Below, in pieces: positions 3,250-64,000 of a DNA stretch of 64,000 nt (position 1 is its first letter; every line of letters starts with the position of its first letter). The notes beneath the pieces are model-generated. The model worked only from the letters and a program-made list of their open reading frames with translations, did no database searches and was not told the DNA's origin. The DNA comes from Selaginella moellendorffii (taxonomy: Eukaryota; Plantae; Lycopodiophyta). The stretch lies in contig NW_003314278.1 of the NCBI RefSeq assembly GCF_000143415.4, positions 2,190,408 through 2,254,407 on the forward strand, written 5' to 3'. A program made the translations under genes and the position numbers.

Positions 3250-4900
3250 TTTTCTTTTTTTATCTTCAAATAGTGATATGAAATGAAATGACACCATCTT
3301 TATTATTATTGTCGAACAAACCATTTAACAACAATTTTCTTTTATCTCATCATTTGCATTGGAAATGTTTCATTTATTAGCAATGAAGCAACCAAGTAAT
3401 GATCCTAAAATACAATGACTTTTAGAATATGTTTTTCTCTTTAGCAAGAAAGCCACTTCTATATCCTTCTCAGTCTCAAGAATATAAATAATTAATTTTC
3501 TTGAAAACAAACTCTCCATATCCTTCCGTGTGAGATTGAAAGAAAATTATAAGTTTATTAAATGTTATCCCACTTGTTTTTGGGTACACATAGAGGATGA
3601 TAAAGGCCAACAAACATCTAATAATTAATTTTGACATTTTGGCATGTCAAATAACTATGTATATACTTCTCAACATTTCCTAAGCTAAAAAAAATGTTTT
3701 TTCACCAATATACATATTCTCTATACCCCCAAATACCCAACACTTAACATATCATGACAATCAATTAATATTTATTTGATGAGTTTATAAACCACTATAA
3801 TTATATTCTTTATGCTCTATGCTTGTACCAAATGTAATGAACATCTTCTATAAAATCTCTTGCTAATGAGTAAGGTCGCCTTGAAGATCATTTTGATGAT
3901 TAAAATATTGAAGAGACTGATAGTCTAAATCCATATAAAAGTTTGATTCATATAAATAATATCACCATTCCTTCATAGTAGCAATCATGATATACAACTT
4001 CTTATCTTAAGTAGGCCAATTTTGTTGTATGGCATCAAACTTGTAGCTCATGTACAGCTAACTAAAACTAATATAGCCCCAATAAAAATATCACTTACAT
4101 TTATCTTGATTGCAAGAGGCTACTTAAGATAAAATTCTAACCATACCAAGGAAACTATGGTGATCATGTATTGTTAAAGGTATAGATCAATCAACCATAA
4201 CTTGGATTTTTGTAGGATTAATTCTTATACTATGCACTAAAATCAAATGCCTAAAATATTCAATCTCCTCTTAAAAAAACTCAGATTTGGATAACTATCT
4301 TTCAAAAGTTGTAAAATACTTCACACATACATTTTATATTCTTCCATTATACAGTTGAACATTAGAATATCATCAAAGTAATTGATCACAAACTTTCCAA
4401 AGTGTTAAACTTGATTCATCAATGCAGGAGCATTTGTTAAACTTCACCAAATACTTGTAATGACTTGTCCTTGTCTAGAATGCCATCTTTGAAACATCCT
4501 CCGGTTTGATATAAATTTGATGATACCCTTGCTTCAGATCAATCTTTGTAAAATATTAAACACCACAAATGTATTTACTACTATTAACTATTTTAAGAGA
4601 AAGAAACTTCCCCTTGTTGTCTATATCAAGTTTATCTTATATGATGTGTGAAGCTTCAATTAATTCCCCTTTACAAGAATTGTTAAATCTAGATGTGGTG
4701 ACACAAAGATGGCCATATGAATATAAATGATAAAGAAAATCATCAATATGGGGGATTGGGTAGATATTCTTCATTGTCTTATTATTAATCCCTTGTAGTT
4801 CATATAAAGACATTATATACCATCTTTATTTTTGACCATCACTAGTGAAACAGCCCAAAAAGACTTGTTTATTTGCGCTTCTAAAGGTATTTAACAAGCT
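3250..4900 (-). mobile_element. Degenerate Ty3/gypsy pol relic (RT and RNase H, possibly integrase)
   Basis: Minus strand reads VMVKNKDG..KNIYPIPHIDDF (about 4740-4860), KIDLKQGYHQIYIKPEDVSKMAF (about 4480-4550) and QQNWPT*DKKLY..KEW*YYLY..DYQSLQYF (about 3905-4040). Many stops are present. Confidence 0.8.
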
Positions 4901-5199
4901 ATTTATTGATTTACTCATTTTTAGGGGGATTAATATGAGTCAACTATCAATGATAAAGAGTAGCTCCAAGAACTAAGTAAATCTTATAGGCAACTCCAGA
5001 AAAATGTCATAAAACACCTTATAAATGCAATTCACACAAACCCTATACAAACATACTCCAACTCAAACATAATTATATTAGAAAGAAACAAGTATACCAT
5101 GAAAAAATTAGCTAACTTCACTAATTCTAAAGCATTAATCAATGGAATATCAAACCACCAACTTCAATATGCAAAATATTACACTCCCAATCAATCCCT

Positions 5200-7080
5200 A
5201 GCTTCCTGTCATAAACCCATTCCTTCCCAAGAATACATCATCATGGCTTCAGCAAGATTTATTAGCATGGTCCTTTCCAATTCAAACAGCATCTCCTTCA
5301 TCAGCTCTCCAGCCCAATGCAAAAGTGCTTGTCCCAAGAGATCGACAATGCCACATAGTGGTCTCTGAGTGGAGCGATTGCATAGTCAGCAACCATGGAT
5401 CTGAAGTACAGGAATGGCTGCAGGCTGTGAGAACACTGACAAAGGTAACCACGTTGGAGAAAATCCCGTGGAGTTCCATGGTTTTGTGGAACTTGAGCAC
5501 TTGGAGTGTATGCCCAGTCTGAGCATTCGACACCATGCTGTTCCAGGTGACCAAATCATGCTCTCATCCTTGCAAAAACCTCCATCGCTTGATCCACACG
5601 ACCAAATTGCCATACATGCTGATGTTCTGATGTCCGACAAGAAAATCTTTCCTGGAATCGTGGAGTGGATCAACTTGCCCTGCGCAAGATCAGGGATGGC
5701 AGCACAGGGATTCAGTGACAGAACAGGTGGCGGCATCAGGAGAATCAGCTTGAGCAACCGGAGAGCTTGGTGAGCATCGCCGCTGCGAGCGTTGGCACAG
5801 ATCATCACGTTCCAAGAGACAACGTTTCGATCCAGCATCCGCTCGAACCAGATGCTGGCCGTCTCAAGATCACCAGCCTGGTAGAATCCAACCAGCATCG
5901 ACGTCCAGGAGTTTACGCACCACTGAGGGATTATGAAGAACACTCGGCAAGGAATGTCCAGCTTCTTTGCGATCACGTATGCATGGAGGAGGCTGTTCCA
6001 GCTTATGTGGTTCCTCTCGACCATCGATTCAAAGCTCCTCTCGGCGTCGAGCACGGTTTCGTCCTGAGCAAACGCATGGAGCATGGCGTTGCAGGACACC
6101 ACATTGTGCTGTGGAGTTTTAGCGTGAGCCTCCCTCGCAGCGATCAAGTTTCCAGAGTCTCCAAATCCGACCAGCATGGTGTTCCAGGAGACGACGTCCC
6201 GAACAGGCATTCCATCAAACATCTCTTTTGGGTGATCCAGGTCGCGACAGTGAACATACGCCGCAAGCATACAATTCCAGCACACAACGTCCTTCTATGA
6301 GAGGCTGTCAAAGACGCTCTTCGTGACTTGCATGTTTCCATCCTGAAATAATAGAGCCGTGCTGGCAATAACGCTTTTCGAGCCCATCATCTGATAAAAG
6401 CGCCTCGCTTGTTCCAGATGCCCAGAGCGGGCAAAAGCCCTCGATCATCACAGTCCATGACACTTCATCCTTTTCAGGGCTGTTCTTCATCACTGCTTGA
6501 TCTAAGTCACCTTCTTGAGCATAGGCTGAGTTCCAGGACACGACATGGTGCTCGGGCATTCTGTCAAAGGCTTCACGAGCAGAGACCATCCCGGGTATAC
6601 GCCGAAACGATAGAGTTCCAGGACACCAAGCTGGTAATTGGCATCTTGTCAAAGAGAGACAAGCTTTCACAAAGGCGACCGAAGTTGGAAAACGCAAATG
6701 CCAGCGCGTTCCAAGACACCACGTCTCATTCCGGAGACAAATCAAACAAGATCTTCGTCGGGTACGGATGCCCATAATGGGCATTTGCTCCAAGAACAAC
6801 GTTCCAAGAGACAGGATTCCACTGTGGCATGATATCAAGAATCTCTTTAGCTTGGGTGGTGCTGGAGGAGTGAAAAATGAGGAGAAAGTTCCAGGAGTAG
6901 ATGTTCTTGACATGGATGGCCTGGAATGCGCTGCACGCGTCGTCATCGTAGCCACATTTGCCATACATGTCCACCGGCAAGTTTCCCAGGTACGTCTCTT
7001 GCAACTCTTCTCCAGACTTGTGCCAGATCCAAAGATTGCACCAGGGCCAGCAGCTGCACCGCTTGATCGCCTCCAATGAA
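5200..7080 (-). pseudogene. Frameshifted PLS/E-class PPR pseudogene
   Basis: PPR motifs (DMYGKCG, MPxxxVVSWN, TFVSVLTACSH and an E-domain-like DLLGQA) are scattered over at least four reading frames. Confidence 0.85.
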
Positions 7081-7224
7081 TTCCGGAGAGATACTTTCTA
7101 GTCAGTATCTTGCTTCAAAGCATATAGTGGTCATATAGGGGAACTTTGCTTCTAGCGTTCCGTTACTTTGATGACGTGGCTGTATCAGAATAGAAGAACA
7201 GAAAAAATAATAAGAGTATTGGCA

Positions 7225-7285
7225 CGAATCTTCCAGATTTGTCAATAGAACTTACCAGATATCTGCCACTCTGCGAGGTATAAAT
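7225..7285 (+). promoter_or_regulatory. Heat-shock elements and TATA box of the small HSP gene
   Basis: cGAAtcTTCcaGAt at 7225-7238, aGAActTACcaGAt at about 7247-7260, and TATAAAT at 7279-7285, about 95 nt before the ATG. Confidence 0.7.
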
Positions 7286-7376
7286 GGGCGTGGAGCTCTT
7301 CCAAGCCTCCATTAGCTTCGTTTTAAGCTATCGATTTTACAGTCTCTCCTAGCTTTCAAGTAAGTAGATTGAGGTG

Positions 7377-7826
7377 ATGGCGCTCTTCTTCTACGGCAAT
7401 GACAATGGTGTCTTCGATCCCTTCCTGGAGCTCTCGTCCATCTTGTCCGGCGGCGGCGGCAACGAGCCCTCCAAGCAGGTAGCCAGGGACGCGAGCGCCG
7501 CCGCCAACACCCGCGTGGATTGGCTGGAGACGCCCGACGCGCACGTCTTCAAGGTGGATCTCCCAGGGCTGAGCAAGGAGGAGGTGAAGATCACGGTGGA
7601 GCACGGGCGCACGCTCCAGATCAGTGGCGAGAGGAAGATGCACGAGGCCCAGAAGACCGACAAGTGGCACCGGGTGGAGCGCCTGTTTGGCAGCTTCATG
7701 CGGAAGTTCCGGCTGCCCAAGAACGCCAACACGGAGGCGATCAAGGCCCAGGTGGAGAACGGGGTTCTCACTATCGTCGTTCCAAAGACTGCCAAGCCGG
7801 AGCCGAAACAAATCCAGGTGGAGTAG
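7377..7826 (+). CDS. Small heat-shock protein (HSP20/alpha-crystallin, class I-like)
   Basis: Intronless ORF with RVDWLETPDAHVFKVDLPG, WHRVER and ENGVLTIVVPK. The ATG is at 7377. Confidence 0.95.
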   Translation: MALFFYGNDNGVFDPFLELSSILSGGGGNEPSKQVARDASAAANTRVDWLETPDAHVFKVDLPGLSKEEVKITVEHGRTLQISGERKMHEAQKTDKWHRVERLFGSFMRKFRLPKNANTEAIKAQVENGVLTIVVPKTAKPEPKQIQVE

Positions 7827-7984
7827 AGCTCGTGGAGTACCTAGAGCTCGCGGACGAGAAGAAAACTCTGCCTTGTATAGAGCAGTGTTGAAAACTGTAT
7901 AGAGCTTGCTTTTCGAGTTTTTAAGATGGGTGTCTCCATCCTTGGTTCTCAGAAGATTTTCAGCACTGGAACTGGGACTGGAAT

Positions 7985-8215
7985 GCTCGATCGTTCCAAA
8001 AATCTTCCTCCCAAGGATTTGACGAGGCAGCCTCTTCCGGGTGTGGAGCCATCTTTCATACTCGATCGTTCCAAACTCATTTGACAGCGTATCTCTTTGG
8101 AGGCGGAGCCATCGTTCATACTCGATCGCTCGAAGCGTTTTCTTCCAGGTTCGTCCACTCAAAAACAGAGTTTGACATAGCAGCCTCTTCCAAAGTCTTG
8201 GATGTGGAGCCATCG
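7985..8215. repeat. Short imperfect duplications at the PPR 3' end
   Basis: CTCGATCG(T/C)TC occurs three times. GGAGCCATC..TTCATACTCGATCG recurs with a 60-nt period, and 8020-8052 copies about 8170-8212. Confidence 0.6.
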
Positions 8216-10394
8216 GGGAGAAAGCCTCTCGCCACCATCTCGTCATACATCGCCATCGCCTCGGCAACCCGGCCCCCATGGATCATGCTCACAATCAGTT
8301 TCCTGTACGCGAAATCGTCCAGCGCAACGCCCTGGCCTCGCATCGCATCCAGCACCACGCAAGCATCGTCCATCCGGTCGCTCTTGCACAGGCCATCGAT
8401 GAGCGAAGTATACACCACCACGTTTGGAGCGTGCCTCTTCCTGCTCATCTCCACGACCAGGCTCCACGCGTCGTCCACTCTTCCCACCCGGCACAGCCCA
8501 AAAACCACGCTCCCCAGCGTCACGTCGTTTGGAAAACACCCGAGGCTCGCCATCTCGTCCGCTAAGTCACAAGCTTCTCTCACTCGGTTCGCCTTGCACA
8601 GCCCATCGATCAAAGTGTTGTAAGTCACCACGTCGGGGACGTAGCCCCGAGCGACCAGGTCCGAGATCAAGCTCACGGCCTTGGAGATGCTGCCGTCCTT
8701 GATCAGCCCACCGAGAACGATGTTGTACGTGAAGAGCGGCGGAACCATGTTGATGGAGACCATCTCTGCGAGGATTTCCCTGGCCTTGTGGACGTTCCCG
8801 GCCCTGCAGTAGCCGCTCACCAGGCTGCTGTACATCACCACTCCTGTTCTACATCCCCGGACGCTCATCTCTTTGACGAGCTTGTGAGCCTCTTCGATCT
8901 CTCCCGACTTGCACAGGCCGTCGACCAGGCTCGTGTAGGCGATCACGTCGGGAATGTAGCCTTGGCGTACGATCTCTTCCAAGAGATAGAACGCGACTTG
9001 GACTTGTCCCACCCGGCATAGCCCGTTGACGAGGATGGTGTACGTGATCACGTCCGGGAGGATGTTCTCCCGGCACATCTCTTCCAAAACTTCCAGAGCC
9101 CGCGGGAGCATGCCGGCCTTGCAGAAGCCATCGAGCAGGGTATTGAAAGTGACCAAGTCCGGGCTGCAGCTCATGGTTTTGAGGATTTCGGCTGCCTCGA
9201 CGACCCTGCCGGCCACACACAGCGCGTGGATGATGCTGTTGTACGTGATCACATCGGGAGCCGGGCCTGCGAGCTTCATGCCGTCCAAGATCTCGAGAGC
9301 TTCTTCAACATCGCCATCTTTGCAGATCCCGCTCACGAGTATGTTGCAAGTCAGCACGTCGGGGTTGATCCCCGCGGCTTTCATCTTCTCTCGGAACTCG
9401 CACACCTCTCGGATCCTGCTAGCTCGGTAGAACGCGTTGATCAGCGTATTGTAAGTCACAATGTCGGGAGCACTCTTCCCTCCTCTCCGGATCATCTCCT
9501 CCAGCAGCTCTCTCGCTTTTTCCAGGTTTCCACTTTTGCACAAGCCACTTATAACCGTGTTGTACGTGAAGATGTCCGGATTCACTCTCGAGCTCTCCAT
9601 ATTCTCAAACAACTTCACTGCTTGATCCGGATTCCCGTCCTTGAATAGGCCATGAATGAGAAAGTTGAAGATGTAAACGTCTGGAGCAACTGAAAACTCA
9701 TCGAGAGCGCGGAGAAACTCCAGTGCTCTCGTCGCTTGTCCTGCCTTGCAGTTCCCGCGGATCAAAATCTTGAAAGTCACCAGGTTTGGCGAGCAGCCAC
9801 TGTGAAGCAAATCCTTGTAGACTTTCCCTGTTCTAAACTGGTGTCCACTCTTGACGAGGATATCCAAAAGATGGTTGTAGGAGTGGACGTCGTGCTTGTA
9901 TCCGTCCTGTTCTCCGGCCCAGTCGAAGAACTGGATAGCCAGATCCGGCCTGGAAGATCTTCTCATGACAGCCACGACCACATCCGGGTCCAAAAGCCGC
10001 GAGCATCCATCCAGGAGCTTCCGAAGATCATCGCCCGGCCTCTTCCTTCTCAGCAGCGACGAGATAAGTTCCACGGAGCTCTTGTGGATCTCAAACTCTT
10101 CCGAGGTGTAAGTCCTGATGTACGCCTGGAGCGCTTCGCTGGAAGAACTCCTCTGGCTGCCGCTGTTAGCTCGAGCCTGGATTCGAGAAGCCGCGCCCTT
10201 GAATCGGAATGCCGCGAAATGGCCCTTGGCGGAGCACTGGAAGCAGCGTTTGTGATTGTTCTTTGGATTTCTCGCGGCATTTGGAGATGGATGCTTCCTG
10301 CCGAGGCAATCCATCCGGAATGTAGGGTGGAAGGAACATACCTGGACGAGCGAGGGAAAACCAAAACCCTAAACCGCAAGAACTCCATGGCCAT
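8116..10394 (-). CDS. P-class pentatricopeptide repeat protein
   Basis: Long array of 35-aa P motifs (PDVVTYNTLIDGLCK). Probable exon 1 at 10394-10342 (MAMEFLRFRVLVFPRSSR, transit-peptide-like) joins in frame through a 44-nt GT-AG intron at 10341-10298. Confidence 0.93.
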
Positions 10395-10523
10395 GCTTTA
10401 ACCACGTAAGAAGTATTTTGGATATAAACCAGTGGCGAGAGATTTTTTGCCCTCGTCCTCGCGAGAGCGAAAGAGAGCGAGGGCGATTGTCAAGGCGGCA
10501 ATGCTGCCGATTGAGGCAGAGCG

Positions 10524-11990
10524 ATGACGCATTTGCGATCGCATCTGGCGCCATTGCAACAGATTCGTGCTCATGCCGATCTACAGAAGGTAATCTCGAT
10601 TCTTCTGACACCGACATTCTCCGGAGAGAGAGAGAATCTCTTGCGCTTCTCTTGCTCAGTGCTCGCCGCCGAGAATCACTTCCAACGTCAAGACGAGCTT
10701 GAAGCTTCTCACAATGCTCAAGGTACTATAGGCAGCTCTCGTGAGAGAGAGTTTCTACCGTGTGATTCTATCTCTACGCTGTCGTTCTCTTTTCAGGAGC
10801 TTGGAAACAACGCAAACAAACAAGCCAAGCCAGCCACAAGCTACAGGAAGAAAAAGGTGGACAAGAAGAGCTTGCCTGAGGATTTTGAGAGCTACGAGGA
10901 TCCGGCAACACAAGTGATCGAGTAAGATGTTTGAGCTAGAAGTTTTTCTGGTGAGCTGGGGAATTCTTTCTCACGATACTTTCCCTGTGATCCAATCCAG
11001 CTGCGGGAAAGAAATCACCATAATTAAACCGGTGCTTCTCGTGGATGGATACAACATGTGTGGCGTCTGGCCCAAGCTAAAGAAACACTTCGCAAGAGGT
11101 GATCTTCTCAGTGCGCGAGAGAAGCTTATTGACGAGCTCGTCACCTTCGGCGCAGCAAGAGGTCTCTCTTGTTTTGTTTTCTCTTCTTTATAACCGCAGC
11201 CCTCGTTCTAGCTGGCAGGAATGAAAGTGGTGGTTGTTTTCGATGCAAAGGAATCGGGTCTGCCATCACACAGAGAATCCAGAGCAAGGTAGACTCCACT
11301 CGACCTCTTTCTATTCCTTTTGGTTTCTTTTTTTGTCCTCTGGGATTTGATTACGCTTTGTTTCTGCAGTGTTGACATCGTGTTTGCGGCCGACGCTTGC
11401 GCCGATTCATGGATCGAGCGTGAGGTACTTTAGATGATTCCTGCATCATGGCTACATAAATTTCCGCTTTGACTGATATCTTTCGGCAGGTCTACTTGTT
11501 GAGAGACGACGGCTGCCCCAAGATCAGAGTCGTAACGTCCGATTCCCTTCATCAGCAGGTTGCAAACGGCGCGGTAAATTCGTGAAAGTCAGAGAACAAA
11601 ACAATGGCTTATTTTCTGCAAAGATTCTTACTGGTTTTTTTCTCGGGTCTTTGACAGGGTGCGTATGTATGGAGCTGCAAAGGTTTGATTGGAGAGGTGA
11701 GACGCTCACCTCAGCTTTAAAGCCAATGGCTTTTTAAGTTCCTGAGCGTTTCAGTTTGCTTGTTTAGATCAAGGACGTGAGGAAAGAATTGGAGCAGCTG
11801 TTACATTCCGACAGGTGATGTTTATATCAGCAAGCGCATTGAGTCAATCACCCAATCTAACATTGTGACTTTTAGGCCATACTCGATGGAAGGCAAATTG
11901 CTAGAACACAACTTATCCCCCGACGTTTTCACCTCGCTCCAGGCGCTCAAGCAAAGGCTCAAGATGGAAGAAGAGCTACAAAAAACATAA
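10524..11990 (+). CDS. YacP-like NYN-domain protein (multi-exon)
   Basis: Spliced exons give PPRITSNVK, TSYRKKKV, PVLLVDGYNMCG, KVVVVFDA, CADSWIERE, DGCPKIRVVTSD and EGKLLEHNL, ending TAA at 11990. The start codon is tentative. Confidence 0.88.
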
Positions 11991-12981
11991 CAAAAACAAA
12001 AAAGATCCCCCCGGCTAACGGTATATTCCACGCCCGCTGGTTATTGGAGCATATTCCGTCAGATTCCCCCCAAAGCCCTAGAATTTTTAGCTAAGCCGGC
12101 GCTGGCGGATCCACACGGCATTATCCGCGCGCGAATGCGCAACTTGCGACATCCGTGGCAGTAGCACAGCAGCGATCATCAATCGCGCAATGAGGAGGTG
12201 AGGAAAGAGGGTGAATGCTGAGTGGGCCAAGCCAAGCAAGCAACAAATCGTCAGTGGCGGCAGCTCGATTGGTTCCATTCTAGTGGAGCACGGCCACATG
12301 CTTCACTGCTGGCTACATCGCTACAGGTCAGCTCCTCTCTGGGCCTTGATCTTCGCATTTCTTACCATTGCTTTAATCAAATTCTTGGGTCTTTCTTGTT
12401 TGGGGCTTGATTATTTCTTACCTTTCGTTCTTGGTGTTCTTGCTTATCAACTATAGTTCTTTCTCTAACATTCGCTGTGCTCCAGTCCAGCGAATGATTT
12501 TATTTTAATCTCCTTGCTGGTGGATTCAGAAAGCTGTGTTCCAGTGAATGATTTGTTTTAATCTCCTTGCTGATGGATTGGCTCGTTCTTTTTCTCCCTT
12601 TTTTTTTTTTTTTTTTGCTTGGGTCAGGGAATCTCTCGCCTATAAGGAGGAGCTACTTTGTGTGTGTGGCGCTAGTGCTGGTACAGCACACAGTCAAACA
12701 TGAGGGTAGCCTCATCATTTTCGGTAAGTTCCCCGTTGGCCCTCCTCTTTTTCTCTCCATGGTTTCTTCTAGGAAGTAGCGACAAGTTCTCAAGCTCACG
12801 TTTTCCTTCCGCTCGACTTAACAGGACGGTGTAAGATGGGTGAGCTGCACCAACAGGGCATTTTTGCCTGACCCGTTGAGGCGGCGAAGAAGATGCTCCC
12901 GTTTGGAGTGAAGAAGACGGAGATGGCTAGCAGAAAGGAGTGAGGGGCGTTCTTCCTCTCTTTCTCTCCTGCTCTACAAGC

Positions 12982-15380
12982 ATGGCTAGCGGCTGGAGAA
13001 AGGCTAGAATTGCTCTCGGGCTGCATGTTTGCGTCTCGGCTCCGCATGATCCTGATGATGAAGGCGGTGTAGATGTGGATCAGGCTGCGTCTCCAGCCAT
13101 CTCCCCTTCTCCTTCTCCCAGATCTGGAGCTCCGAATACTTCTGCAAGGTCTCCCTCTCGTCTCCAGCTGCTCCGGAGTAGCATTCGTCTCTCTCGGGTA
13201 TGATCTTTATTTTGTGGAGTCGCAATTTTTGTTTCCTTTTGTTTTTTTTCAGATTCAATTCTCAAAGCCGATTTTTTTTTGTTGTTTTCTTTTTCCAGAG
13301 TGCGTGCTCCATCTGCCTGGAGCCCATGAAGCCCGGACTTGGCCATGCTCTTTTCACAGCCGAGTGCTCTCATACGTTCCACTTCTCGTGTATTGCTTCC
13401 AATGTACGGCATGGAAATCTGGTATGTCCGGTTTGTCGAGCTAGATGGAAGGAGGTTCCTTGGCAGGCTCCTCCAGAAGCAGGCAAGGATCAAAAGCTTT
13501 CGCCGAGACCCAGACGAAGCCTTTCCAGGAACTCTGAGCAGGAAGGGATTAACAACGGAGAGGGTGCTGAGGTCGGTGACGAAGAATTGAGAAGGCTGGA
13601 TCCCGTGCTGAGAATTCTAGATGAGTCCATTGCAAGTGCTCGAGGAATCAGAAGGAACAGCACCCCAGAGCCACAGAGTTTCGATGACGACGAGCCTCTG
13701 AGAGTGGACGGAGGTGGGGAATTGAGTGCTGGAGGAGCAGAAAGCAGCGAGTCAGACCTCGTAAATTCGGACGATGGCAACCTTGAAGTAACCTGTCACC
13801 CCGAAGTCGAGAGCATTTGCTACTCCGAGTCACGAGATGATTTTACGGTACTGGTTCACGTCAAGGCATTATCTGGAAACAAGCGGCCAGCAGCTGAGAC
13901 TGTAAGCACTCAGGCTTTGTCATCAAACACAACTTCTCGAGCTCCAATCGATCTTGTTACAGTCCTGGACGTGAGTGGGAGCATGGCTGGGACCAAACTT
14001 TTGCTGCTCAAGCAGGCGATGGGCTTCGTCATTCGGAACTTGAGCCCCTCGGACAGGCTTTCGGTGATAGCGTTTTCGTCAACCGCAAAGCGCTTGTTTC
14101 CTCTGCGTCGTATGGTCGAAGATGGCAAGCAACTTGCGCTCCGGGCCATTGACGCGCTAGTCTCGACTGGAGGAACAAACATTGCGGAAGGCTTGAAGAA
14201 AGGTGCCAAGATCTTGGACGACAGGAGGGAACGCAATCCAATCGCAAGTATCATGCTGCTCTCGGACGGCCAAGACACTCACAGCTTGGGTGCTCGAGCT
14301 AATGCCCAGCTATCCAGAGGTGGCAGCTTTCGTCGGGGGCTAGGCTCTGGGAGGCACTTGATGATGCCTTATGGAAGCGTCTCGTTTCCAGTCCACACTT
14401 TTGGTTTCGGGGCCGACCACGACTCGGCGACGATGCATTCCATAGCCGAGAGCTCGGGTGGTACTTTCTCCTTCATCCAAGCGGAAACGGCCGTTCAGGA
14501 TGCCTTCGCTCAGTGCATTGGCGGCCTCCTCAGTGTCGTCGTCCAAGATGCACGGCTCTGCTTCTCCACGGCGGGGGAGAACCTCCAGGTGAAGAGCGTC
14601 CAGGCAGGAAGCTACGAGAGGTCCATCACTGACCAGGGGACCCGCGGCTTTGTCAAACTGGGAGATTTGTACGCCGAAGAAGAAAGGGACGTACTTCTGG
14701 AGTTCCGAATCCCCATGCTCGAAAGTCCGCTGCTCTCAGCCGGGATCGTCAGTGTCGATTGCTCGTTCAAGGATCCTGTTCTCCAGAAGCCGGCTCGCAC
14801 GAGAACCAAGACACTGTCCATAGACCGGCCAGGCAGCGTCAACAGGGAGAACCAAGTGGTGAGCGTGCAGGTGGATAGGCAGAGGAACAGGATTCGCACC
14901 GCGGAGACCATCCTCGAGGCCGGATGCCTGGCGGACAGGGGCGATCTTGTCGGAGCCCAGCAAACGCTCCAGAGCGCCAAGGTGGCTCTCAGAAACTCGG
15001 CCGCGTCGCTTGCCGGCGACCAGCTCTCGAGCGCGCTCGAGTCGGAGCTGACGGAGATCCAGGTGAGGATGGCAAACAGGCAAATGTACGAGCGCTCCGG
15101 CCGGGCTTACATTCTCTCGGCTCAGAGCTCTCACTTCCGGCAGCGTGCCACTGCTCGGGGCGACTACGTCGAGTCCCACAGCCGGGACTATCAAACTCCG
15201 TCCATGGTGGACATGATCTTGAGGTCCCAGACGCTAACTTTTCCTTTGCCACCCTCGACTCCGCCGGCTGGTGCTACTGCTCTTCCTCCCGAGAGATCGT
15301 CCTCGATCGGCAGCAGGCATTCGTATTCAAGCTCGAGGCGGGCCTCTGGACGCGTTCACGACATCGGAACTTCCTTGTAA
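12982..15380 (+). CDS. RING-H2 plus vWA E3 ligase (WAV3/EDA40 family)
   Basis: Exon 1 begins MASGWRKA, followed by an intron at about 13198-13298. Then come the RING (CSICLEPM..ECSHTFHFSCI..CPVCR) and the vWA motifs DLVTVLDVSGSM and LLSDGQD. Confidence 0.93.
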
Positions 15381-24739: not shown

Positions 24740-24777
24740 AAATCAAATACCACTCTTGAAACAAAATCCAATCCGGC

Positions 24778-26065
24778 TCAAGGAAGACATCTCATTCTCT
24801 GCAGAAGCACAAAATCCATGAGTAAAACATTGTTTTGTTGAAGAAGACCAAACCTGTTCCTCCAGCTCATTTGATGCTTGAATCAATCTTCTCCTCAAAA
24901 TGGACACTTCGTCCTCGCACTTTAAAGGAACAGGATCCACATCTGAAATTACAATTACTTTAGGTGAGTAAAGGACTACATAAAGCGAAGGAATTACCAT
25001 AGTAGTACGTCGAAAGAATGGTTACTCGTTCCTGGGGCTGAAATTTAAAACAGAGATGAAAACAAGAAAAAAATAAAAACAGCCTCGTACCATCACAAAA
25101 ATCCCTTCGCGCTTTGTAGGCAGCTCTTGGAGGAGTTCTAATGTTTCAAATCCTTTGGTCACCTTCCCAAACACAGCGTACTGCAAAACAAAAAAGGAAA
25201 ACAAGGAAAGGTCAACCTTGTACAAGCGAGTAAGATGAAACTTGTTTTGCAGTGTCTGAAGTCAGCACCATTATTCTGATGCGTACAAATTCTCTGCAAG
25301 TTTACTCTAGCATTCTTCTTTTCTAGCGCAGCTGTTTACATGCGTACAACAGTAGCAGCTGCTTTGTGTTACAGAAGAATGCAACGGGAAAACAGCATAA
25401 AAAGAAAAAAGAATGAGACTTACCTCCCGATCAAGGTGTGGTGCAGAACCAAGTAAGATTGAAAACGACGATTGAGCGCTGTTTGGATCACTATACCTGA
25501 AAAGAAAAGCCACAAATCACTTGAAATTCTCCATAAAACGAAAAGACCATAAACACAGAGAGAGCTCACCTCACCTGCCCATGGATAAAATCCCACGAAC
25601 ATGTTTCACGTCCGAAAACTCCCCCTTGATCGTTTTCTTCCCCTCCTCCATCTGAGCTTCATTTAGAGGAGCCTTTCTTCCTCCAACAACATCAGCGACT
25701 TGTGCAACAAATCCTTTGTCGACCTTCTCGCCAAAAAAAAAAAGAAAGAAAAAAGCGAAGAAATCGGTGACATTCTCCAAAATCTATATACCCTGAAGAA
25801 ATGGTTCGTGTTGTACGCTCCGAGCCTGACAAGCTTGAAAATGTGCTCCACGGTGACGGGAGCAACATCGGGATAGAATCCAAATTCAATGTCGCCATAC
25901 TTTGTCTGCCAAATCCGAGAGAAAAAAGGCTTTGAGATCTGAGGGATGAGAAGAAGATCTACACATTACCTGGAAGACGACTCGAGTGGATCCCAGCTGC
26001 GGCTCCGCCACAGCCGCCGCTGCCGCGCAGGCTAAGCACAAAAACCCTATTCTCCAGAGTGCCAT
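24778..26065 (-). CDS. CYP23: Cyclophilin, CYP23-like, with signal peptide
   Basis: Exons give PQLGSTRVVFQ, TKYGDIEFGFYPDVAP, VDKGFVAQVADV, KHVRGILSMGR, SFSILLGSAPHLD and YAVFGKVTKG, ending RMRCLP*. Confidence 0.9.
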
Positions 26066-49360: not shown

Positions 49361-52300
49361 TTAATTGAATTTTGCATAAGTACATAGAGTTCTGCCTTGC
49401 AGAAATTCCTCCACTAGATCTCGCGCGTTCGCTAGGTTCTCCTCCGGTTCCCATGTTGCTTCGCAGTATGGAAATCCTTTCCACTTCACATGGAACTCTC
49501 TCACCTCGCGTCCTTGTCGCTTGCTCTTGCGCACATTGAGGATGGCCTCGACTTCGTATTCCTCTTCCCCTTGGATAACCTCAGGTAAAGGTCTCACTTG
49601 GTCCTTGCGAAGCAGATCCTCAAAGTACGGCTTGAGTAAGTTCACGTGGAACACTGGGTGCATCTTCCCCATCTCTCGAGGAAGTCGGAGTCGGTAAGCC
49701 ACTTTACCGATTCGTGCCTCAATTTCATAAGGCCCCGTGAACCTGCTTAAGGAACTCAAGATCAATTCATTTACAGGAATACATGCATCTTTACCTTTGG
49801 GTCAACTTTCGGCTGATCCCACTTGGTAGTCTGAGGTTCTTGGTGTTCAGCCACACCTTCTCCCCAGCTTGGAACTCCACATCCCGACGCTTTTGGTTCG
49901 CATACTTAGTTTGCCTTTGTTGAGCCCATTCCAAGGAATCCCTCACTAGATTCCAAATGTTGAGTCTTTCCGCCGTGAATGCCTCCACTGCGGGTAACTC
50001 TCCATGATACTCGGCCATGCCGAGTTCCGCAGGACCTTCAATAGCTCGCCCATTGATGACTTCCCATGGACTCACCCCGATGCTTGAGTGTGGTGAGTTG
50101 TTATAACACATTTCCGCAAGTCCCAAATGACTTACCCAGTCGGTCTGGTCTCCCGAGACATAGCATCGCAAATAATCCTCCAGCTGCCTATTCACCCTTT
50201 CTGTTTGTCCGTCTGTCAAGAAGTGTTAGTGCCATCAATCTTGACTTAATACCCATTACCTGTTTGTGGGTGATAGGCTGTGCTGAATTTCAATTTGGTG
50301 CGATACTGTTCTAGGAGTGTCCTCCAGAACCTACTAGTGAAGATCTTATCTCGATCTGAGATAATCTCTTCCGGCCTTCCCCGCACTCGGACCACTTGTT
50401 CGAAGAATAGCTTCGCCACACCTTCCGCATCCACGTCCGTTGTGGTGGGTATGAAATGTGCCATCTTTGAAAATCGGTCCACCACCACGAATATCGCATC
50501 GAACCCCTTGCTTGGGGGTAGTCCCGTGATGAAGTCCATCGTAAGACATTTCCACGGGTGATCTGGAATTGGGATGCTTTGCAACAAGCCCCCACTAGCC
50601 TTAGTCACGGCTTTGACCTGCTGACATGTTGGACATGTCTTTACATAGTCTTGGACGTCCTTAGCCATATCTGGCCAATGGTACTTCGTCTTGAGTAAGC
50701 CCATCGTCTTGGGCACTCCGCCGTGTCCCGCAAGAGGTCCGTCATGACACTCTTCTAAGGCTACCTTCCTTAGTCCCCCTTCTGGAACATACACCCTCGT
50801 TTGCTTGTAATAAATGAGTCCGTTGCGTTCCGCATAGCCCGTTTTCTCTTCCGTTGGCAACTCACCTCTCTGGTGAGCTTCCCGCGCCTCCAGATTCCTC
50901 AACAACACTTCTTGTGCTAGACCATCATTCTCATATGCTGTCCGCACATCGTCCCAGAAGGTTGCTGTTGCGCTGGAGATCGCCAACCTCAAGCTCGCTT
51001 TTCGACTTAGCGCATCTGCCACGATGTTGCTCTTCCCAGGCTTGTACAGAATCTCGCAATCAAACTCGGCCAAGGCATTGGCCCACCGACCTTGTTTCCC
51101 TCTCAGGTCGGGTTGTGACAAGAAGTGTTTCGTTGCCACATTGTCCGTGTAAACCTTGAAGTGTCTCCCAAGGTAGTGTCGCCACTCCTTGAGCGCCTTG
51201 ACCACCGCAAACAATTCCTTCTCGTGGGCAGGCCACTTCCGTTGAGCCTTGTCCAGCTTCTTCAAGAAGAACGCTACTGGATGGTTGTCTTGCTTCAAAA
51301 CTGCGCCCAACGCAAAGTCCGAAGCATCCGTGTCTACCTCAAAGTCCTTACCAAAGTCTGGTAATGCCAACACCGGAGCCTTCCTCAACTTCCCTTTGAG
51401 GTGGACGAATGCCGCCTCGCATTCCGCTATCCATACCATCTTCCCTTTTCCCGTTTGATCTGTTAAGGGCAGAGCTACTCTCGAATAGTGTCTGATAAAC
51501 TTTCGATAGTAGTTGCATAGCCCCAAGAATGCCCTCAACTCATGTACATTCGATGGTCGCTCCCATTCCTGGATCGCTTGGACCTTCTCCGGGTCCACCT
51601 TGAGCCCGTCTTGGCCCACCACATGCCCGAGAAACTTTACCTCTTGCTGAGCAAAGTCACATTTGCTCTCTTTAGCATACAGTTTATGTTCCCTTAGTTT
51701 CTCAAACACCTTCGCCAAGTGTTCGGCATGCTCCTCTAGCGTCTCGCTATAGATCAGGATGTCGTCAATATAGACAACCACGAAGTGATCCAGATAGGGT
51801 ACAAAGATGTGGTTCATCAACGCCGAAAACGTTGCCGGCGCATTGCACAGCCCAAAGGGCATCACCAAAAACTCAAAGCTCCCATACCTCGTTCGACAGG
51901 TTGTCTTCTCGACATCTTCCTCGGCTACCCTGATCTGGTAGTATCCTGACCTTAGGTCAATCCTCGAGAAGTATTTTGCCTTTCCCAACCTATCGAACAG
52001 GTCCTCAATCCTTGGCAACGGGTACTTGTTCTTCTTGGTATACTTGTTGAGCAACCGGTAATCTATGCACATGCGCATAGATCCATCTTTCTTTTTCACA
52101 AATAATACCGGTGCCCCATACGGCGACTTGCTCAACCTAACATACCCTTTGCCCACCAACTCCTCTAGTTGGCACTTGAGCTCCTTGAATTCTTTTTCGT
52201 TCAAACGATAGGGGGGACGAACCACCGCCTCCGCACCCTCGACCAGCTCAATCTTATGTTCTATCGGTCGTGCGGGGGGTAACCCCGCCGGTAGCTCCTC

Positions 52301-54133
52301 CGGCATGGTATCCTGGAATTGGTCCAACACCTGCTGGATCACTAAAGGTATTTCTTCCGTTCCTGTCTTTTTGTCACTCTTCACCGAGAGTAAGCACAAA
52401 AAGGCTGCCTTAGTTCCTTTAGTGAGTTGTCCTCTCGTGGACACCAGGTTTAAGCAAGATTCTTTGGCCTTGCTTTGCCCTACCTTTAGATCCTGGGCCT
52501 CCACCCTAGATCTTCTTCCTTGGGCATTCGCTAGTACCACAAGGTTCCTACCTTGTCCATGCAGGGCTACCACGAACCGATTGAACCAATCCATTCCGAA
52601 GATCACGTCAAATCCCGCCATGTCCAACACGGTGAAATCCATGTCTACTTTCCATGTCCCTACTTCGACTCTCGCTTGTCGAAGTACCTTATCGGTGCTT
52701 TGGCTACCTTGAACAAACTCTATAGTCCTTGGTTCGCCTAGCCGCTGCACCGTTAGTCCGGCTTGCCGGACTATGTCTGCAGCCACAAAATTATCCGAAG
52801 CACCCGTGTCAATAAGGATCTTAACAAAGCTACCTCCAAGCTTCCCTCGGAGGGCTAGTAGATGCCGCGAACGACTCTCTACCAAAGTTGCTCGTGTAAT
52901 GAGCAACTTTGAGTTAAGGACTGGATCACATACCTCAGTTTGGACTTCACCCGACTTGATGGCCATATTGGCTCTGGCCTTCTTCGGGTAGGGACATTCC
53001 CTCGAGAAGTGTCCCGCTTCACCGCAGTTGTAGCATACGTTGTTTCCCACGCTGCTATATGACTTGACCTTCTTATCCGTGGGTTTGTCTCTTTTCGCTT
53101 AACTCCCCCACGTACTTGCTCGCTGGCCACCGGATTTGCCTTTCCGGAACCCAGAGGACTCATTCTTAGAGAAACTCTTCTTGAATTTCCCCCTGCTATA
53201 TGTTCCCCTTGGTTTGGCCCCTTTGCTGAACGTGGATCCCGACCCCGTCGTGTTCCCCTTTCGCAGGTTATCATTGAAATGCACCTTGATGGCCACATCC
53301 AACGCTTCCTTGTAGTTGGTCGGGTTCCAGCGCATCACCTCACCGCGAGCCCAGGTTTGCAAACCTGATATGAAGGCATGGAACGCATCCATATCCCCCA
53401 TGTCCGTGACAAGTATCCTCTTTGCCATGAACCCATTCACATATTCCTGGATGGTTCCAGTCTGCTTCAGCCTACTCAGTTCATCCCTCAGATGCAGAGT
53501 GGCATTCGGAGGAACATATGTTGCGCGGATCCTCGCCTTCATCATGTCCCAAGTGACCACCGGTCCTTTGTTGGCCTCCGTTGTTCTCCACCAAGACTTG
53601 GCATTATCTGCCAAGTATGGTTTTGCACATGGGACCTTCTCCGAGCTCGATAACCGCAACGCTCGGAAGTAGTCCTCCATATCGTAAAACCAATCCTCCA
53701 CCACCTTATAGTCATTCACTCCCTTGAAGACCGGTGGGGGCTTTGGTTTGTACTTGGGAACTGCCTGAGGGACTGATTCCACTTCAGTCTGTTTGACCTT
53801 GTCTGGTTTTGCCTCAGTCCCTGCCGAAAGGTCCGCACCTTCTGCGCTGCCAACATCCGCAGTCTTTCGCCTTTTCTTCCGCTTCTCGTCACGCTTTAGC
53901 TTGCGTACGAGAGTCTCCAGCAGGGCATTGGTCTGTGCCAATTGACCTTCTAGAACGTCCAATTGAGCCTTGGACGACCGAACCTCGCCACCGGACTCCT
54001 GTTTGGAAGTTTCCTCACTAGAGTCCTCCTCATGCAAGGATTCCTCATCCATAGCCTCTTGTTCGACCGGAGGCTCCAGCTCTGGCAGAGGTTCTGTCTC
54101 CGCCTGGGTTCGCTTACGCCCTGCCCTTGCCAT
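49361..54133 (-). CDS. Gag-Pol polyprotein (Gag, CCHC, protease, RT, RNase H, integrase, chromodomain) with one in-frame TAA and two predicted introns
   Basis: [38 protein letters not shown]35-E, GPY and KWKG..TWEP. TAA at 53101-53099. Predicted introns at 50259-50213 and 49794-49743. Confidence 0.88.
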
Positions 54134-60001: not shown

Positions 60002-61343
60002 ATGGAAGCCATGGTGATCAGGAAATTGGTAATAGCTCTTGTGATGGCGGTGTATAGGATTCTTGCGGTTCGATCGGGCCAGTCCAGCAGCGGCAGCATT
60101 GTCAGCCCCGATTCCATGTTTGCATTTGGGGATTCTTTGAGCGACACCGGAAACGATGCCTCGGCGTTCCCTGGATCAAAGCCCTCGCTCCATTACGGCC
60201 AGACTTTCTTCCGCAAGTTTGCTGGCCGGGCCTCGGATGGGAGGCTTCTCATTGATTTCTTGGGTCAGTTCTTTCGATCTTCCTTTCCAAGTGAATTTCT
60301 TTTCAAGTTCTTGTTCTTTCTCCGAAACTTTTAGCGCAAGCATTTGGTCTTCCATTCCTTAGCCCCTACTTGCAAGATTTCAATGCGGACTATCGGCATG
60401 GAGTCAACTTCGCGGCTAGAGGAGCCACTGCTCGCAGCACCTCGATCGTGACACCGTTTTTTCTTAGTGTTCAAGTCAGCCAGATGATCCACTTTCGCGA
60501 AGCTGTTCTTGCTGCTCCACAAGGTTCCAGTGGTAAACTTTTGTTTGGCTCTTGCTAAGCTTTTGCTCGCAGCCACTCCACTCCTCCCAAACTCGACTGT
60601 GTTCTCCACGGCGCTCTACGTGATCTACATTGGGATCAACGATTTCTGGCAAAATCTAAACAACAATCGCATGACCATCCAGCAGATAAACTCGACCGTG
60701 GTTCCCCAGTTGATACAAACAGTACCCAAAGCTTTGGAGGTAGCAATTCTTCTTCTTCTTCTTCTTCTTTATATGTAACAATGAGATGATCTTTCTCACG
60801 TCTTTCTCTTAAGGCACAAGCAGAGGCTCTACCACGACGTTGGCGCGAGAAAGTTTCTTATTGTCACTGTTCCTGCCGTGGGATGCCTTCCAGTCGTCTT
60901 GAGTGAGTTTGGATCCTCCAGTCCGGAAGATTACGATGCCAGTGGCTGCTTGCGAGCTTTCGACGATGTCGTGGGGTCGTACAACGCACGGCTGCGCTCT
61001 CTGGCTCTCGGTTTCGCGGGGAAGTTTGCTCAAGCTCGAGTTTTCTTTGGAGATATCTTCGCGGTTCACAAGGATGTGATTGCCAATCCCGAGCTTCACG
61101 GTACGTTGTGCTGATCGAGCTTTGTTGATCTTTCTCGCGGCAGGATTTGCGCCAAGCTCGAAGTTGAGTGCTTGCTGCGGTGGCGGCGGCAAACTCCATG
61201 AAGCCGTGAAGCAGTGCGGGGTGATTGCCACGCCGGTTTGCGAGTCCCCGTCCTCCTACATCAGCTGGGACGGGATCCATTTCACTGACGCGTTCAATCG
61301 CGTTGCCGCTGCCAGTATCCTTGGATCGATTCCATCGATTTAG
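60002..61343 (+). CDS. GDSL esterase/lipase (multi-exon)
   Basis: Signal peptide, FAFGDSLSDTGN, GRASDGRLLIDFL, GVNFAARGA, IGINDF and SWDGIHFT. Confidence 0.95.
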
Positions 61344-61395: not shown

Positions 61396-62362
61396 TCAGT
61401 TGTCTGGCGACAGAAACACGCATGGATCAGAGCTAGATTGAAAGGAAAGAAAGAACTTTGCAAGAGTAAGTACCAAGAATGCCACACTGCGAAATGACAA
61501 TCTTTGCGTATGGTCGATTGAATCCCCTCTCAGCAACCACTGCTCGGGTATCGCCTATAAGCTTGGCAGTGCTGTGGGGATCCGAGATGAGATTTTTCCC
61601 AAGGAACGAAGAGAAGAAAATACATACCGGAAGTAAAGATTGCTCGTGTTATCTTTGACCACCCTGGTACTCGCGATCTTCCGGACAACGTCCAGGCCTT
61701 CTACCACCCGGCCTACCACCGAATTCGTTGGATCAAGCTCCGGAGCATCCTCAAAGGCAATGCAAAACTCAGTCCCGTTTGGATCCGGCCGTGACTCTTC
61801 GTACACGACTTCAAACTTCCCGTCGCGAGCTATAAGTTTCGGCTTTGCTGGAGGCTTTGTGGCATCTATGGCCACGATCGAAACCGCACCTTTCACGTTC
61901 TTCGGCCGTTTCCCTGTCTCGTCTAGCGTTTTCATCTCGCTGGCTAGAGCTTTAGCGTCTAGACCACCTGCGAATTGAGCTGTATCCTTGGCTCTACCGC
62001 TCAGGCTGAAGGTCCTGAGGCCTCCATTCTGTATGTAGTTCCCTGTTATCTTGTAAAAATCTCGCTTCCTATAACTCACTCCCTTCTGACCAGCCGCAAT
62101 CTCTCCAAAGCGTCTGGCGCCCACTGGTACGTCGTCTTCGTAGAGTCCAACGACGACGCGGCCTGCCGGTTCTCCATCGATGCTGATGTCCAGAAACACT
62201 TTGCGTGTCACAGTTGGACACGGCTCTTCGTCAGCGAAAGCAAAATTGTCAAAAGTACCGTGCAATGCCCCTAGTGTATACACTGCCTGAGCAACAAAGC
62301 TGCGTTTTCCAGTTGAGAAACTTAAGAAAGGCTTTTCATTCTCTTTTGCTCCAGCGGATTTC
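61396..62362 (-). CDS. Thylakoid-lumen cyclophilin, CYP26-2-like (first exon unresolved)
   Basis: FLDISIDGEPAGRVVVGLY, KPPAKPKLIARDGK, PNGTEF and RAVVAERGFNRPY. It is preceded by KRSF, a hydrophobic stretch and AFA/DEE, a lumen-targeting-like signal. Confidence 0.88.
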
Positions 62363-62567
62363 CTATATACAATGTCAGTATAATAAATATCAAGAAACTA
62401 CACACCCGCGTTCTTTCGCTTTTCTCTAGCATGCAATGTAAATAGCATACCTTCTGCGACACTAATAACCCTTTCTAATGTGTTTATACCGACCACATAA
62501 CTATGAACGGGTTGCTGAATCATGCTCTATCGAAAGCAGAATTCATCTGCCAAAACCGAAAAGGTAC

Positions 62568-64000
62568 TTAGTACCTGTTGAAATGTATGCATATGCATGG
62601 TAACTTCAGCACCTAGAGATGGAATAATTCTTACCTTCGAGAAAATGGAAGCGAGAGAATCGCTAGAACAACCTTGACAACCTTTTCAGGAATTCCACTG
62701 AAATTAAACATGTCAATAAGGGAAGCAACAAGCAATTTAGCTCAATACCTTTTTTTCTCATCTAGCGCTTTCACTTCGGATTTCTTCGTGGCGTCCGATT
62801 CAACCCTGCAGAAGAGGCTATTTAGTAGCTGTTGAAAAATGTGTTTACATTTTGACCACTGCCCATACGCGCAAAACAAACTTACCGGACTTTGCTTTTG
62901 CTACAAATATACGAACAAGCAACCACAACATGGAGTTTAAGTTTCGCGCATTACTTCTCGTCAAAATCATAAATGCAAGATCCATTGTCACTCCTTGCGG
63001 TTGGGTCATAGTTCGCTGCATTGGGATCCGCGCACCCTTCAGGCACTGGAATGTTAACCTGTTGTGCGGCCTTTCCTGAATCAATAATACACAGAGGTCC
63101 AGCAGAGGATAAGAACAAACAAGTAGTTACCGTAAATGTTGGATTTATCGGCGACGGAAATTTTGGGTTTAGAAGCTTCAGCAGAAAAGTCATATTCGCA
63201 AGTTCCATCATCGCTTCTTGCAGTCGGATCGAAATTAGCAGCATTGGGATCGGTACAGCCCTCAGGAACTGGAAGATTGATTTGCTGTGCAGCTTTTCCT
63301 GAAAAAAAAATGGTTAACAATCTCTCAGGTGTTTTAGAAAACGTACCATATAAATTATCTTTTTCAGCTTTTTGACCTTCGGAAAAATCATAAACACAAG
63401 TTCCATCATCGCTTCTTGCCGTTGGATCGAAGTTTATAGCATTGGAATCCGTACATCCCTCCGGCACTGGAAGATTAATCTGTTGTGCAGCCTTGCCTGG
63501 TAGAAATGTTCAAGCAAGCAAATAAAAGAAAAACGCACGAGCTTAAATGCTTACCATACAAATTGTCTTGTTTCAAAGAACTCGTTGCGGGAGTTTTCTC
63601 AGCAAAATCATATTCACAAGTTCCGTCATCACTTCTGGCCGTAGGATCGAAGTTTCTTGCGAAGGGATCAGCGCAGCCTTCTGGAACTGGAAGCTTGACC
63701 GCTTGGGCAGCTTTGCCTGCAGTTAAAATGTTCCTCTAAGAAAAGAGAAAGAACGGCGAGTTTTTCTTTTTTACCGTAGAAGGTATCCTTCTCCCTTTCA
63801 TCCTCATTTGCATCACCCAAGGAACTCCCCTTCATATACTTATCAGCCAGATGATATCGCTTCACATTCTCCTGCTCTTGAACAAGCATATTTCCATATT
63901 CGAGTAGCTTGTCAATCGTCATGGGAGGCTTTGGAAAAGTCGGGGGACCATCCTTAGAGTTGACCAGCTTCGGGCCTATATTTTCCACCCCAACCTGGGT
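62568..64000 (-). CDS. RCA: Rubisco activase, 3' part, with fourfold C-terminal extension
   Basis: KLVNSKDGPPTF..KLLEYGNMLVQEQENVKR..ADKYM..TFYG, then four exons of GKAAQ..PVPEGCxDx..N(F/Y)DPTARSD(D/N)G(T/S)C. The gene runs off the window end. The stop is 62951 or, after further exons, about 62568. Confidence 0.93.

Follow-up and report, generated by a model that had tools for sequence, protein, structure and literature searches.

Does the activase gene RCA, which lies at one end of this window, finish at its own stop codon, or do the small exon-like segments that follow it add a tail to the protein, and if they do not, to which gene do these segments belong? The window, by which we mean the whole 64,000-nucleotide stretch of DNA that was analysed, comes from GL377582.1, a scaffold of Selaginella moellendorffii (stretch at about 2.19-2.25 Mb). 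RCA runs on the minus strand at the far end of the window and extends past the window edge at 64000; coordinates given for the RCA tail region and for CYP26-2, the cyclophilin gene downstream, are all on the minus strand. The relevant parts of RCA are:

63776-63997, minus strand: upstream exon of RCA (Pfam RuBisCO_activase_AAA_helical)
63716-62951, minus strand: redox C-terminal-extension modules 1-4 of RCA, each with the motif and two Cys
62951..63075, minus strand: module 4, the last canonical RCA exon, ending ...CIYDFDEK with the TAA at 62953-62951

Extensions of the RCA alpha type comprise about 35-40 residues at the C-terminus, with the motif KxAQQxNxPVPEGCxDP...DPTARSDDGxCxYxF and two Cys about 19 residues apart, and angiosperm RCA-alpha has one extension copy. 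Here the motif, in the form KAAQQxNxPVPEGCxDP...DPTARSDDGxCxYDF and with two Cys per copy, is present in all four modules (4/4); the tail proposed further downstream does not carry it. An activase with four tandem redox extensions is unusual and worth study in its own right. Because each module occupies its own phase-1 exon, any of them could be skipped without loss of frame. The four module introns measure 48-58 nt, and intron 3 (63346-63299, minus strand; 48 nt) is in frame and stop-free (ORF 63081..63467); its retention would add 16 residues between modules 2 and 3, and the protein would not be terminated. The 3' end of module 4 reads GAC GAG AAG TAA, which places the stop 7 residues past the second Cys. 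RCA-alpha reportedly ends a few residues beyond this Cys (Zhang and Portis 1999), and the RCA stop is thus at the usual end of a redox extension. A search of the PDB with module 4 returned no matching chain. RefSeq holds at least five isoforms of 'RCA 1' in S. moellendorffii, up to X5 and from two loci (PMC9951593, Table 1), and for isoform X4 the theoretical mass is given as 73.8 kDa (PMC6928197), which fits a multi-module activase, the mass itself not telling which C-terminus is carried.

An initial annotation of this DNA proposed that splicing from a donor at the RCA stop adds three micro-exons to the activase, which encode a charged linker and a hydrophobic helix that could tether the protein to the thylakoid or envelope membrane. 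The segments between the RCA stop and CYP26-2 are as follows, a slash marking a splice point here and below:

62901..62954, minus strand: putative intron A, 54 nt, GTAATG...TGTAG; contains the ATG at 62931-62929
62886..62900, minus strand: micro-exon 1, 15 nt; (N)KSKV(R) in the frame of the initial annotation, AKAKS in the frame of the ATG at 62931
62806..62885, minus strand: putative intron B, 80 nt, GTAAGT...CTGCAG
62749..62805, minus strand: micro-exon 2, 57 nt; VESDATKKSEVKALDEKK in the frame of the initial annotation (62804-62751)
62698..62748, minus strand: putative intron C, 51 nt, GTATTG...TTTCAG; contains the ATG at 62711-62709
62635..62697, minus strand: micro-exon 3, 63 nt; GIPEKVVKVVLAILSLPFSR (62696-62637), ending TCT CGA AG/
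62575..62634, minus strand: intron D in the model of the initial annotation, 60 nt, GTAAGA...AACAG
62451..62574, minus strand: candidate 124-nt cassette ('poison') exon, starting G TAC TAA, with short dead-end ORFs only
62363..62450, minus strand: putative intron E, 88 nt, GTATGC...ATATAG, the acceptor being closely preceded by TACTGAC, which resembles a branch point

Peptides predicted for the region are VESDATK, SEVKALDEK and VVLAILSLPFSR, together with YDFDENK across the RCA junction.

The architecture on which that proposal was built can be read directly from the sequence. Across the AAG-TAA junction of RCA lies a donor-like GT (62954-62953; GAGAA/GTAATG), module 4 read through unspliced ends in DEK at the TAA, and the three phase-2 micro-exons of 15, 57 and 63 nt are all present, open and bounded by canonical GT-AG introns. 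The 47-residue reading was likewise reproduced, from translations made exon by exon (micro-exon 1 gives KSKV at 62899-62888) and from the codons split across the chain (AA/C for N, CG/G for R, AG/T for S and AG/G for R, followed by TAC TAA, with the stop at 62570-62568); spliced models were handled exon by exon throughout, and joined readings such as this one are local frame bookkeeping only. The RY with which the proposed tail ends requires the acceptor at 62575, which leads into the 124-nt candidate exon upstream of CYP26-2. This exon has a good donor at its 3' end (GAAG/GTATGC); a further option is that intron D forms the 5' portion of a longer intron of 272 nt (62634-62363). Inclusion of the 124-nt exon stops the frame after two codons (RRY and a stop), and skipping it lets the frame run into CYP26-2.

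Introns A-D have GTA donors, YAG acceptors and pyrimidine tracts, and their lengths are in line with those of the RCA module introns. Exons are also richer in GC (0.43-0.47) than introns (0.33-0.40), an alternation that RCA shows too. Open chains are easily found when only bare GT-AG rules are imposed: 83% of Markov-randomised sequences then allow an open chain of at least 46 residues, and enumeration under loose rules gave 21,606 splice chains from an ATG to CYP26-2, so that open frame paths by themselves are weak proof. Under the stricter rules that all four proposed introns obey (GTA donor, YAG acceptor and pyrimidine tract), a chain was found in 3.5% of the randomised sequences, and chains with at least four introns in none of 400; of 489 GTA sites in non-genic sequence from the window, 1.6% had such a chain, and no chain had three or more introns. 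Introns A-D are probably real, because strict-rule chains are this rare in both randomised and non-genic sequence.

The hydrophobic part of the predicted tail falls short of a membrane anchor. Its longest hydrophobic run, VVKVVLAILSLPF in micro-exon 3, has 13 residues with a mean Kyte-Doolittle value of 2.38, an internal Lys, and a Pro near its end or after it. The best 19-residue Kyte-Doolittle window reaches 1.33 and the helical moment (muH) is 0.3-0.5. For a tail-anchored or transmembrane segment we required a helix of at least about 18 residues near the C-terminus with a 19-residue Kyte-Doolittle mean of at least 1.6, and the predicted tail does not reach these values. Since it has only 13 residues, VVKVVLAILSLPF cannot span a bilayer and is at best a weak amphipathic patch. 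In common with tail-anchored membrane proteins, the tail has a hydrophobic stretch within about 10 residues of its predicted C-terminus, followed by basic residues; in those proteins, however, the stretch comprises about 18-22 residues, whereas here it has 13, contains a Lys, is followed by a Pro and is of sub-threshold hydropathy. The exon translations of the tail contain no Cys and no RCA extension motif, and show no similarity to RCA. The literature yielded isoform names and one theoretical mass, but no paper that deals with a tail on the RCA of Selaginella, with repeated extensions or with a link between RCA and a cyclophilin. The proposal of a membrane-tethered activase is therefore not supported by the length and hydropathy of the run: the genuine-looking exons and introns and the phase-compatible donor stand, but they give no support to an RCA-specific membrane tether.

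If the micro-exons are not an activase tail, the gene immediately downstream is the candidate owner. It comprises:

61628..62362, minus strand: main exon of a CYP26-2-like gene, 735 nt, encoding a cyclophilin domain (Pfam Pro_isomerase, E=2.5e-17)
61433..61571, minus strand: last CYP26-2 exon, (R)TAKLIGDTRAVVAERGFNRPYAKIVISQCG..., with the stop TAG at 61435-61433; compared with the C-termini of relatives

The intron between them (61627-61572) measures 56 nt. The main exon also encodes an acidic spacer, a twin-arginine-type motif (KR), a hydrophobic region and AFA/DEEP (the slash here marking the putative cleavage point), that is, a twin-arginine-type lumen signal right before the domain. Cleavage behind AFA would give a mature N-terminus of DEEPCPTVTR. 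Its best matches are Marchantia Mp6g17300 (60-61%) and Riccia (58-60%), and judged by this similarity the gene is an orthologue of CYP26-2. Traced upstream, this frame stays open as far as 62397, with no ATG before ...ASEMKTLDE; the main exon thus lacks a start, and coding exons must lie upstream, between it and the RCA stop, a distance of about 590 nt. Within that interval, the TCT CGA AG/ that ends micro-exon 3 (62635) can be joined to tatatag/G AAA TCC (62363/62362), a phase-2 junction that carries the frame on into the cyclophilin.

The product of this gene appears to have escaped annotation. A collection of 5.8 billion proteins contained no S. moellendorffii protein of 123-392 aa with the main exon and, in this length range, nothing above 60% identity to it; among representatives of 50%-identity clusters, searched without a length limit, nothing exceeded 61% identity to the main exon. 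A wider search was headed by a 560-aa cyclophilin, and generic cyclophilins dominated the matches listed, Marchantia CYP26-2 not being among them, which makes this search uninformative. The exact products of a retrotransposon gag ORF and of a 198-aa ORF are not on record either. As no stand-alone CYP26-2 protein is on record, annotators did not find a simple independent gene. JGI/UniProt/EukProt and RefSeq thus seem to lack a stand-alone CYP26-2 at this locus, as would be expected if its start is obscure or if RCA transcripts cross the gene, and CYP26-2 here appears to be an unannotated or mis-annotated gene.

Comparison with the CYP26-2 genes of other plants bears on what precedes the main exon. 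In Marchantia, the big exon follows three small leader exons, whose introns are in phases 1, 0 and 2; exon 3 ends ATA CGA AG/ and exon 4 begins /T GTG GCA, in phase 2. Riccia fluitans CYP26-2 has the same AG/T junction (..ggcag/T GTT), also after three small leader exons, and in assembly GCA_022343405.2 a small first exon is joined to the big exon by a phase-2 AG/G. In alignment A2, the main exon of the window gene and exon 4 of Marchantia and Riccia begin in one and the same column; GKR faces SRR in this alignment, the second R being invariant, and AFA/DEEP faces ALA/EDE. The window gene, too, has a phase-2 intron at the conserved position, leading from a small leader exon to the big exon. 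Because both the column and the phase of this junction are shared with the liverworts, micro-exon 3 is best read as the exon before the main exon. Like the leaders of Arabidopsis AT1G74070 and Marchantia Mp6g17300, that of the window gene has an acidic spacer, a motif of the twin-arginine type, a moderately hydrophobic region and A-x-A, and as in Marchantia several small 5' exons are followed by a phase-2 ..CGA AG/N intron. The likeness has its limits. The window gene has KR in place of RR; its leader exons, unlike those of known CYP26-2 genes, begin 50 nt past the stop of another gene and have no clean start codon; its leader sequence as such cannot be aligned with those of the liverworts; and the first two intron phases are 1 and 0 in Marchantia, as opposed to 2 and 2 in the chain of the initial annotation and 1 and 2 in a chain that starts from the ATG at 62931. 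A resemblance between the Marchantia leader and the window (MAAFATIPPR with MFNFSGIPEK, and LTRQPGRT with LNRTPRRN, Marchantia first) was rejected as evidence, since the leaders of Riccia and Marchantia differ from each other equally. In Marchantia (locus 1823-12561) a DnaJ gene lies upstream of CYP26-2 on the opposite strand, with no RCA nearby, and in both Marchantia and Riccia a DUF7895 gene lies downstream of CYP26-2. As Marchantia has no RCA beside CYP26-2, the adjacency seems specific to the Selaginella lineage, or is at least absent from liverworts.

The start codon is the weak point of any gene model here. The micro-exons as delimited by the initial annotation contain no in-frame ATG, and the two candidate starts are both awkward. 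The ATG at 62931 lies 17 nt past the RCA stop and reads MLWLLVRIFVAKAKS to the donor at 62886, which it reaches in phase 1, as exon 1 of Marchantia does. Its chain, read by eye from the sequence, needs a weak internal donor, AA/GTGAAA (62775/62774), if it is to meet micro-exon 3 in frame, and that donor is outdone by a stronger one 26 nt downstream; moreover, the first 10 codons coincide with the apparent pyrimidine tract of intron A. Transit peptides are typically basic and without acidic residues: the first 29 residues in the frame of this ATG are basic with none acidic, whereas the frame of the initial annotation has 7 acidic residues in 24 over the same DNA. In the former frame a TGA overlaps the GTGAAA donor (62775-62771), the second overlap of a stop and a donor within 180 nt. 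The other candidate, the ATG at 62711 (MFNFSGIPEK...), shares the frame of micro-exon 3, and the ORF that it opens is the simplest; this ATG lies inside the well-formed intron C and as a start would require this intron to remain unspliced. Micro-exon 1 has a good acceptor and hence calls for an upstream donor, the nearest phase-compatible one being that which overlaps the RCA stop.

Taking these results together, we put at about one in two the probability that the micro-exons would be genuine small 5' leader exons of CYP26-2, into which RCA read-through transcripts may occasionally be spliced. The initial annotation had itself allowed that the exons might be part of the CYP26-2 transcript only, and this now appears to hold in large part. 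The micro-exons would encode the portion of a bipartite chloroplast/lumen targeting sequence that precedes the twin-arginine-type signal, the latter being encoded by the first part of the main exon. In the productive CYP26-2 mRNA, position 62635 would be joined to 62362, the 272-nt intron being removed and the 124-nt exon skipped, and VVKVVLAILSLPF would be a piece of a cleaved leader and not an anchor of RCA. A leader of this kind would agree with Arabidopsis, where CYP26-2 is a proven lumen protein with its mature N-terminus at residue 75 (PMC8346976). Since only 50 nt lie between the RCA stop and micro-exon 1, RCA read-through transcripts could splice into the micro-exons; a conjoined mRNA of this type that includes the 124-nt exon would end its frame in RRY and, because introns follow that stop, would probably be degraded by nonsense-mediated decay. 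Against CYP26-2 as the owner of the exons count the 272-nt intron, which is long for the RCA/CYP26-2 locus, the micro-exons without an in-frame ATG, the two awkward candidate starts, the good acceptor of micro-exon 1 with its nearest phase-compatible donor at the RCA stop, and the missing record of a separate CYP26-2 protein.

Four other explanations deserve to be weighed. RCA and CYP26-2 might form one transcription unit, in which splicing at the RCA stop and at the 124-nt exon would choose among three products (the plain four-module activase, the activase extended by a short hydrophobic tail, and a read-through that enters CYP26-2 or shares exons with it); a start-less CYP26-2 would then depend on the RCA promoter and perhaps on the exon for the RCA transit peptide. 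We consider this unlikely. Still less probable is a dedicated activase tail, that is, a regulated alternative splice that removes the RCA stop, adds the 47-residue charged linker and hydrophobic helix, and yields a functional, membrane-binding activase. The donor at 62955/62954 is indeed phase-compatible and the four introns are well formed and of typical size; the 73.8-kDa isoform X4 (PMC6928197) is compatible with a short extension, at least five RCA 1 isoforms exist (PMC9951593), and the missing separate CYP26-2 protein would fit RCA transcripts running over that gene. There is also a parallel in angiosperms, where the RCA alpha and beta forms arise by alternative 3' splicing around the stop codon (Werneke et al. 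1989, as cited in PMC9951593), so that here, as there, a splice choice beside the stop would decide between ending the protein and extending its C-terminus. Alpha/beta splicing, however, adds a redox extension with two Cys, whereas in Selaginella four such extensions are already constitutive and the tail has neither Cys nor similarity to RCA, its last coding exon being shared in frame with CYP26-2. The 13-residue run speaks against a dedicated tail as well, since it is not long enough for a transmembrane anchor and its amphipathicity is only moderate, and so does the position of the stop: at least one more intron and the CYP26-2 exons would come after a stop in the 124-nt exon, which predicts nonsense-mediated decay unless polyadenylation is immediate. 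Nor does Marchantia CYP26-2 have RCA as its neighbour, and the arrangement would be lineage-specific.

A splice-like landscape that is never used is as improbable as the dedicated tail. The region would then be RCA 3' UTR together with the promoter and 5' UTR of CYP26-2, with translation from the ATG at 62711 and a single leader intron. This start gives the simplest complete ORF, with a 69-residue leader close in length to that of Arabidopsis (mature N-terminus at residue 75; PMC8346976), and open chains under bare GT-AG rules are common (83%). On the other hand, strict-rule chains are rare in random and non-genic sequence alike, GC alternation and intron sizes match those of real introns, an upstream ATG at 62761 precedes the start, and so easy a gene model is found in no database. 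We give somewhat less credence again to a true fusion, or conjoined gene, in which CYP26-2 would be made only from RCA-initiated transcripts, having lost its own start or sharing RCA exons. The frame is open from RCA module 4 through the micro-exons into the cyclophilin if the 124-nt exon is skipped, no independent ATG is convincing, and micro-exon 1 has its good acceptor. As in conjoined tandem genes, the two genes lie on the same strand, 50 nt separate the stop from the first exon, and phase-compatible sites allow an in-frame bridge; they differ from such pairs in that no fusion protein was found among the cluster representatives. Indirect hints of a conjoined transcript are the missing record of a separate CYP26-2 protein and the five RefSeq isoforms (PMC9951593). 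A fusion of about 960 residues would very likely be its own 50%-cluster representative, but nothing above 61% identity was found. Moreover, the cyclophilin retains its KR, hydrophobic region and AFA, aligned with the lumen signals of its relatives, and a lumen signal works at an N-terminus, not within a stromal protein of 70 kDa.

If the micro-exons are indeed leader exons of CYP26-2, the matter is mostly one of annotation: public Selaginella annotations apparently lack the protein of a conserved lumenal cyclophilin, the reasons being an obscure start codon and leader exons that lie right behind the RCA stop. The idea of a membrane-tethered activase should then not be adopted. The locus also provides a test case for how compact plant genomes separate, or fail to separate, two highly expressed chloroplast genes on the same strand.

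At its 3' end, CYP26-2 (61433, minus strand) faces a convergent gene for a GDSL-type lipase (60002-61343, plus strand), with the motif FAFGDSLSDTGN in its first exon; the two stop codons are about 90 nt apart. The window has another annotated cyclophilin gene (Pro_isomerase, 234 aa) at about 24740-25400 (L003 21762-22399, minus strand), about 36 kb from the CYP26-2-like gene. The window further contains an intronless WAV3-like ORF (13200-15377) that is 100% identical to LOC112346725, and a Ty3/gypsy retrotransposon (50246-54133, minus strand) with a gag of 344 aa and a pol of 934 aa, comprising protease, RT, RNase H and integrase domains, whose flanks are AT-rich (GC 0.26-0.36). PPR genes and an AP2 gene are also present and, with the Ty3/gypsy element, fit a plant nuclear genome.
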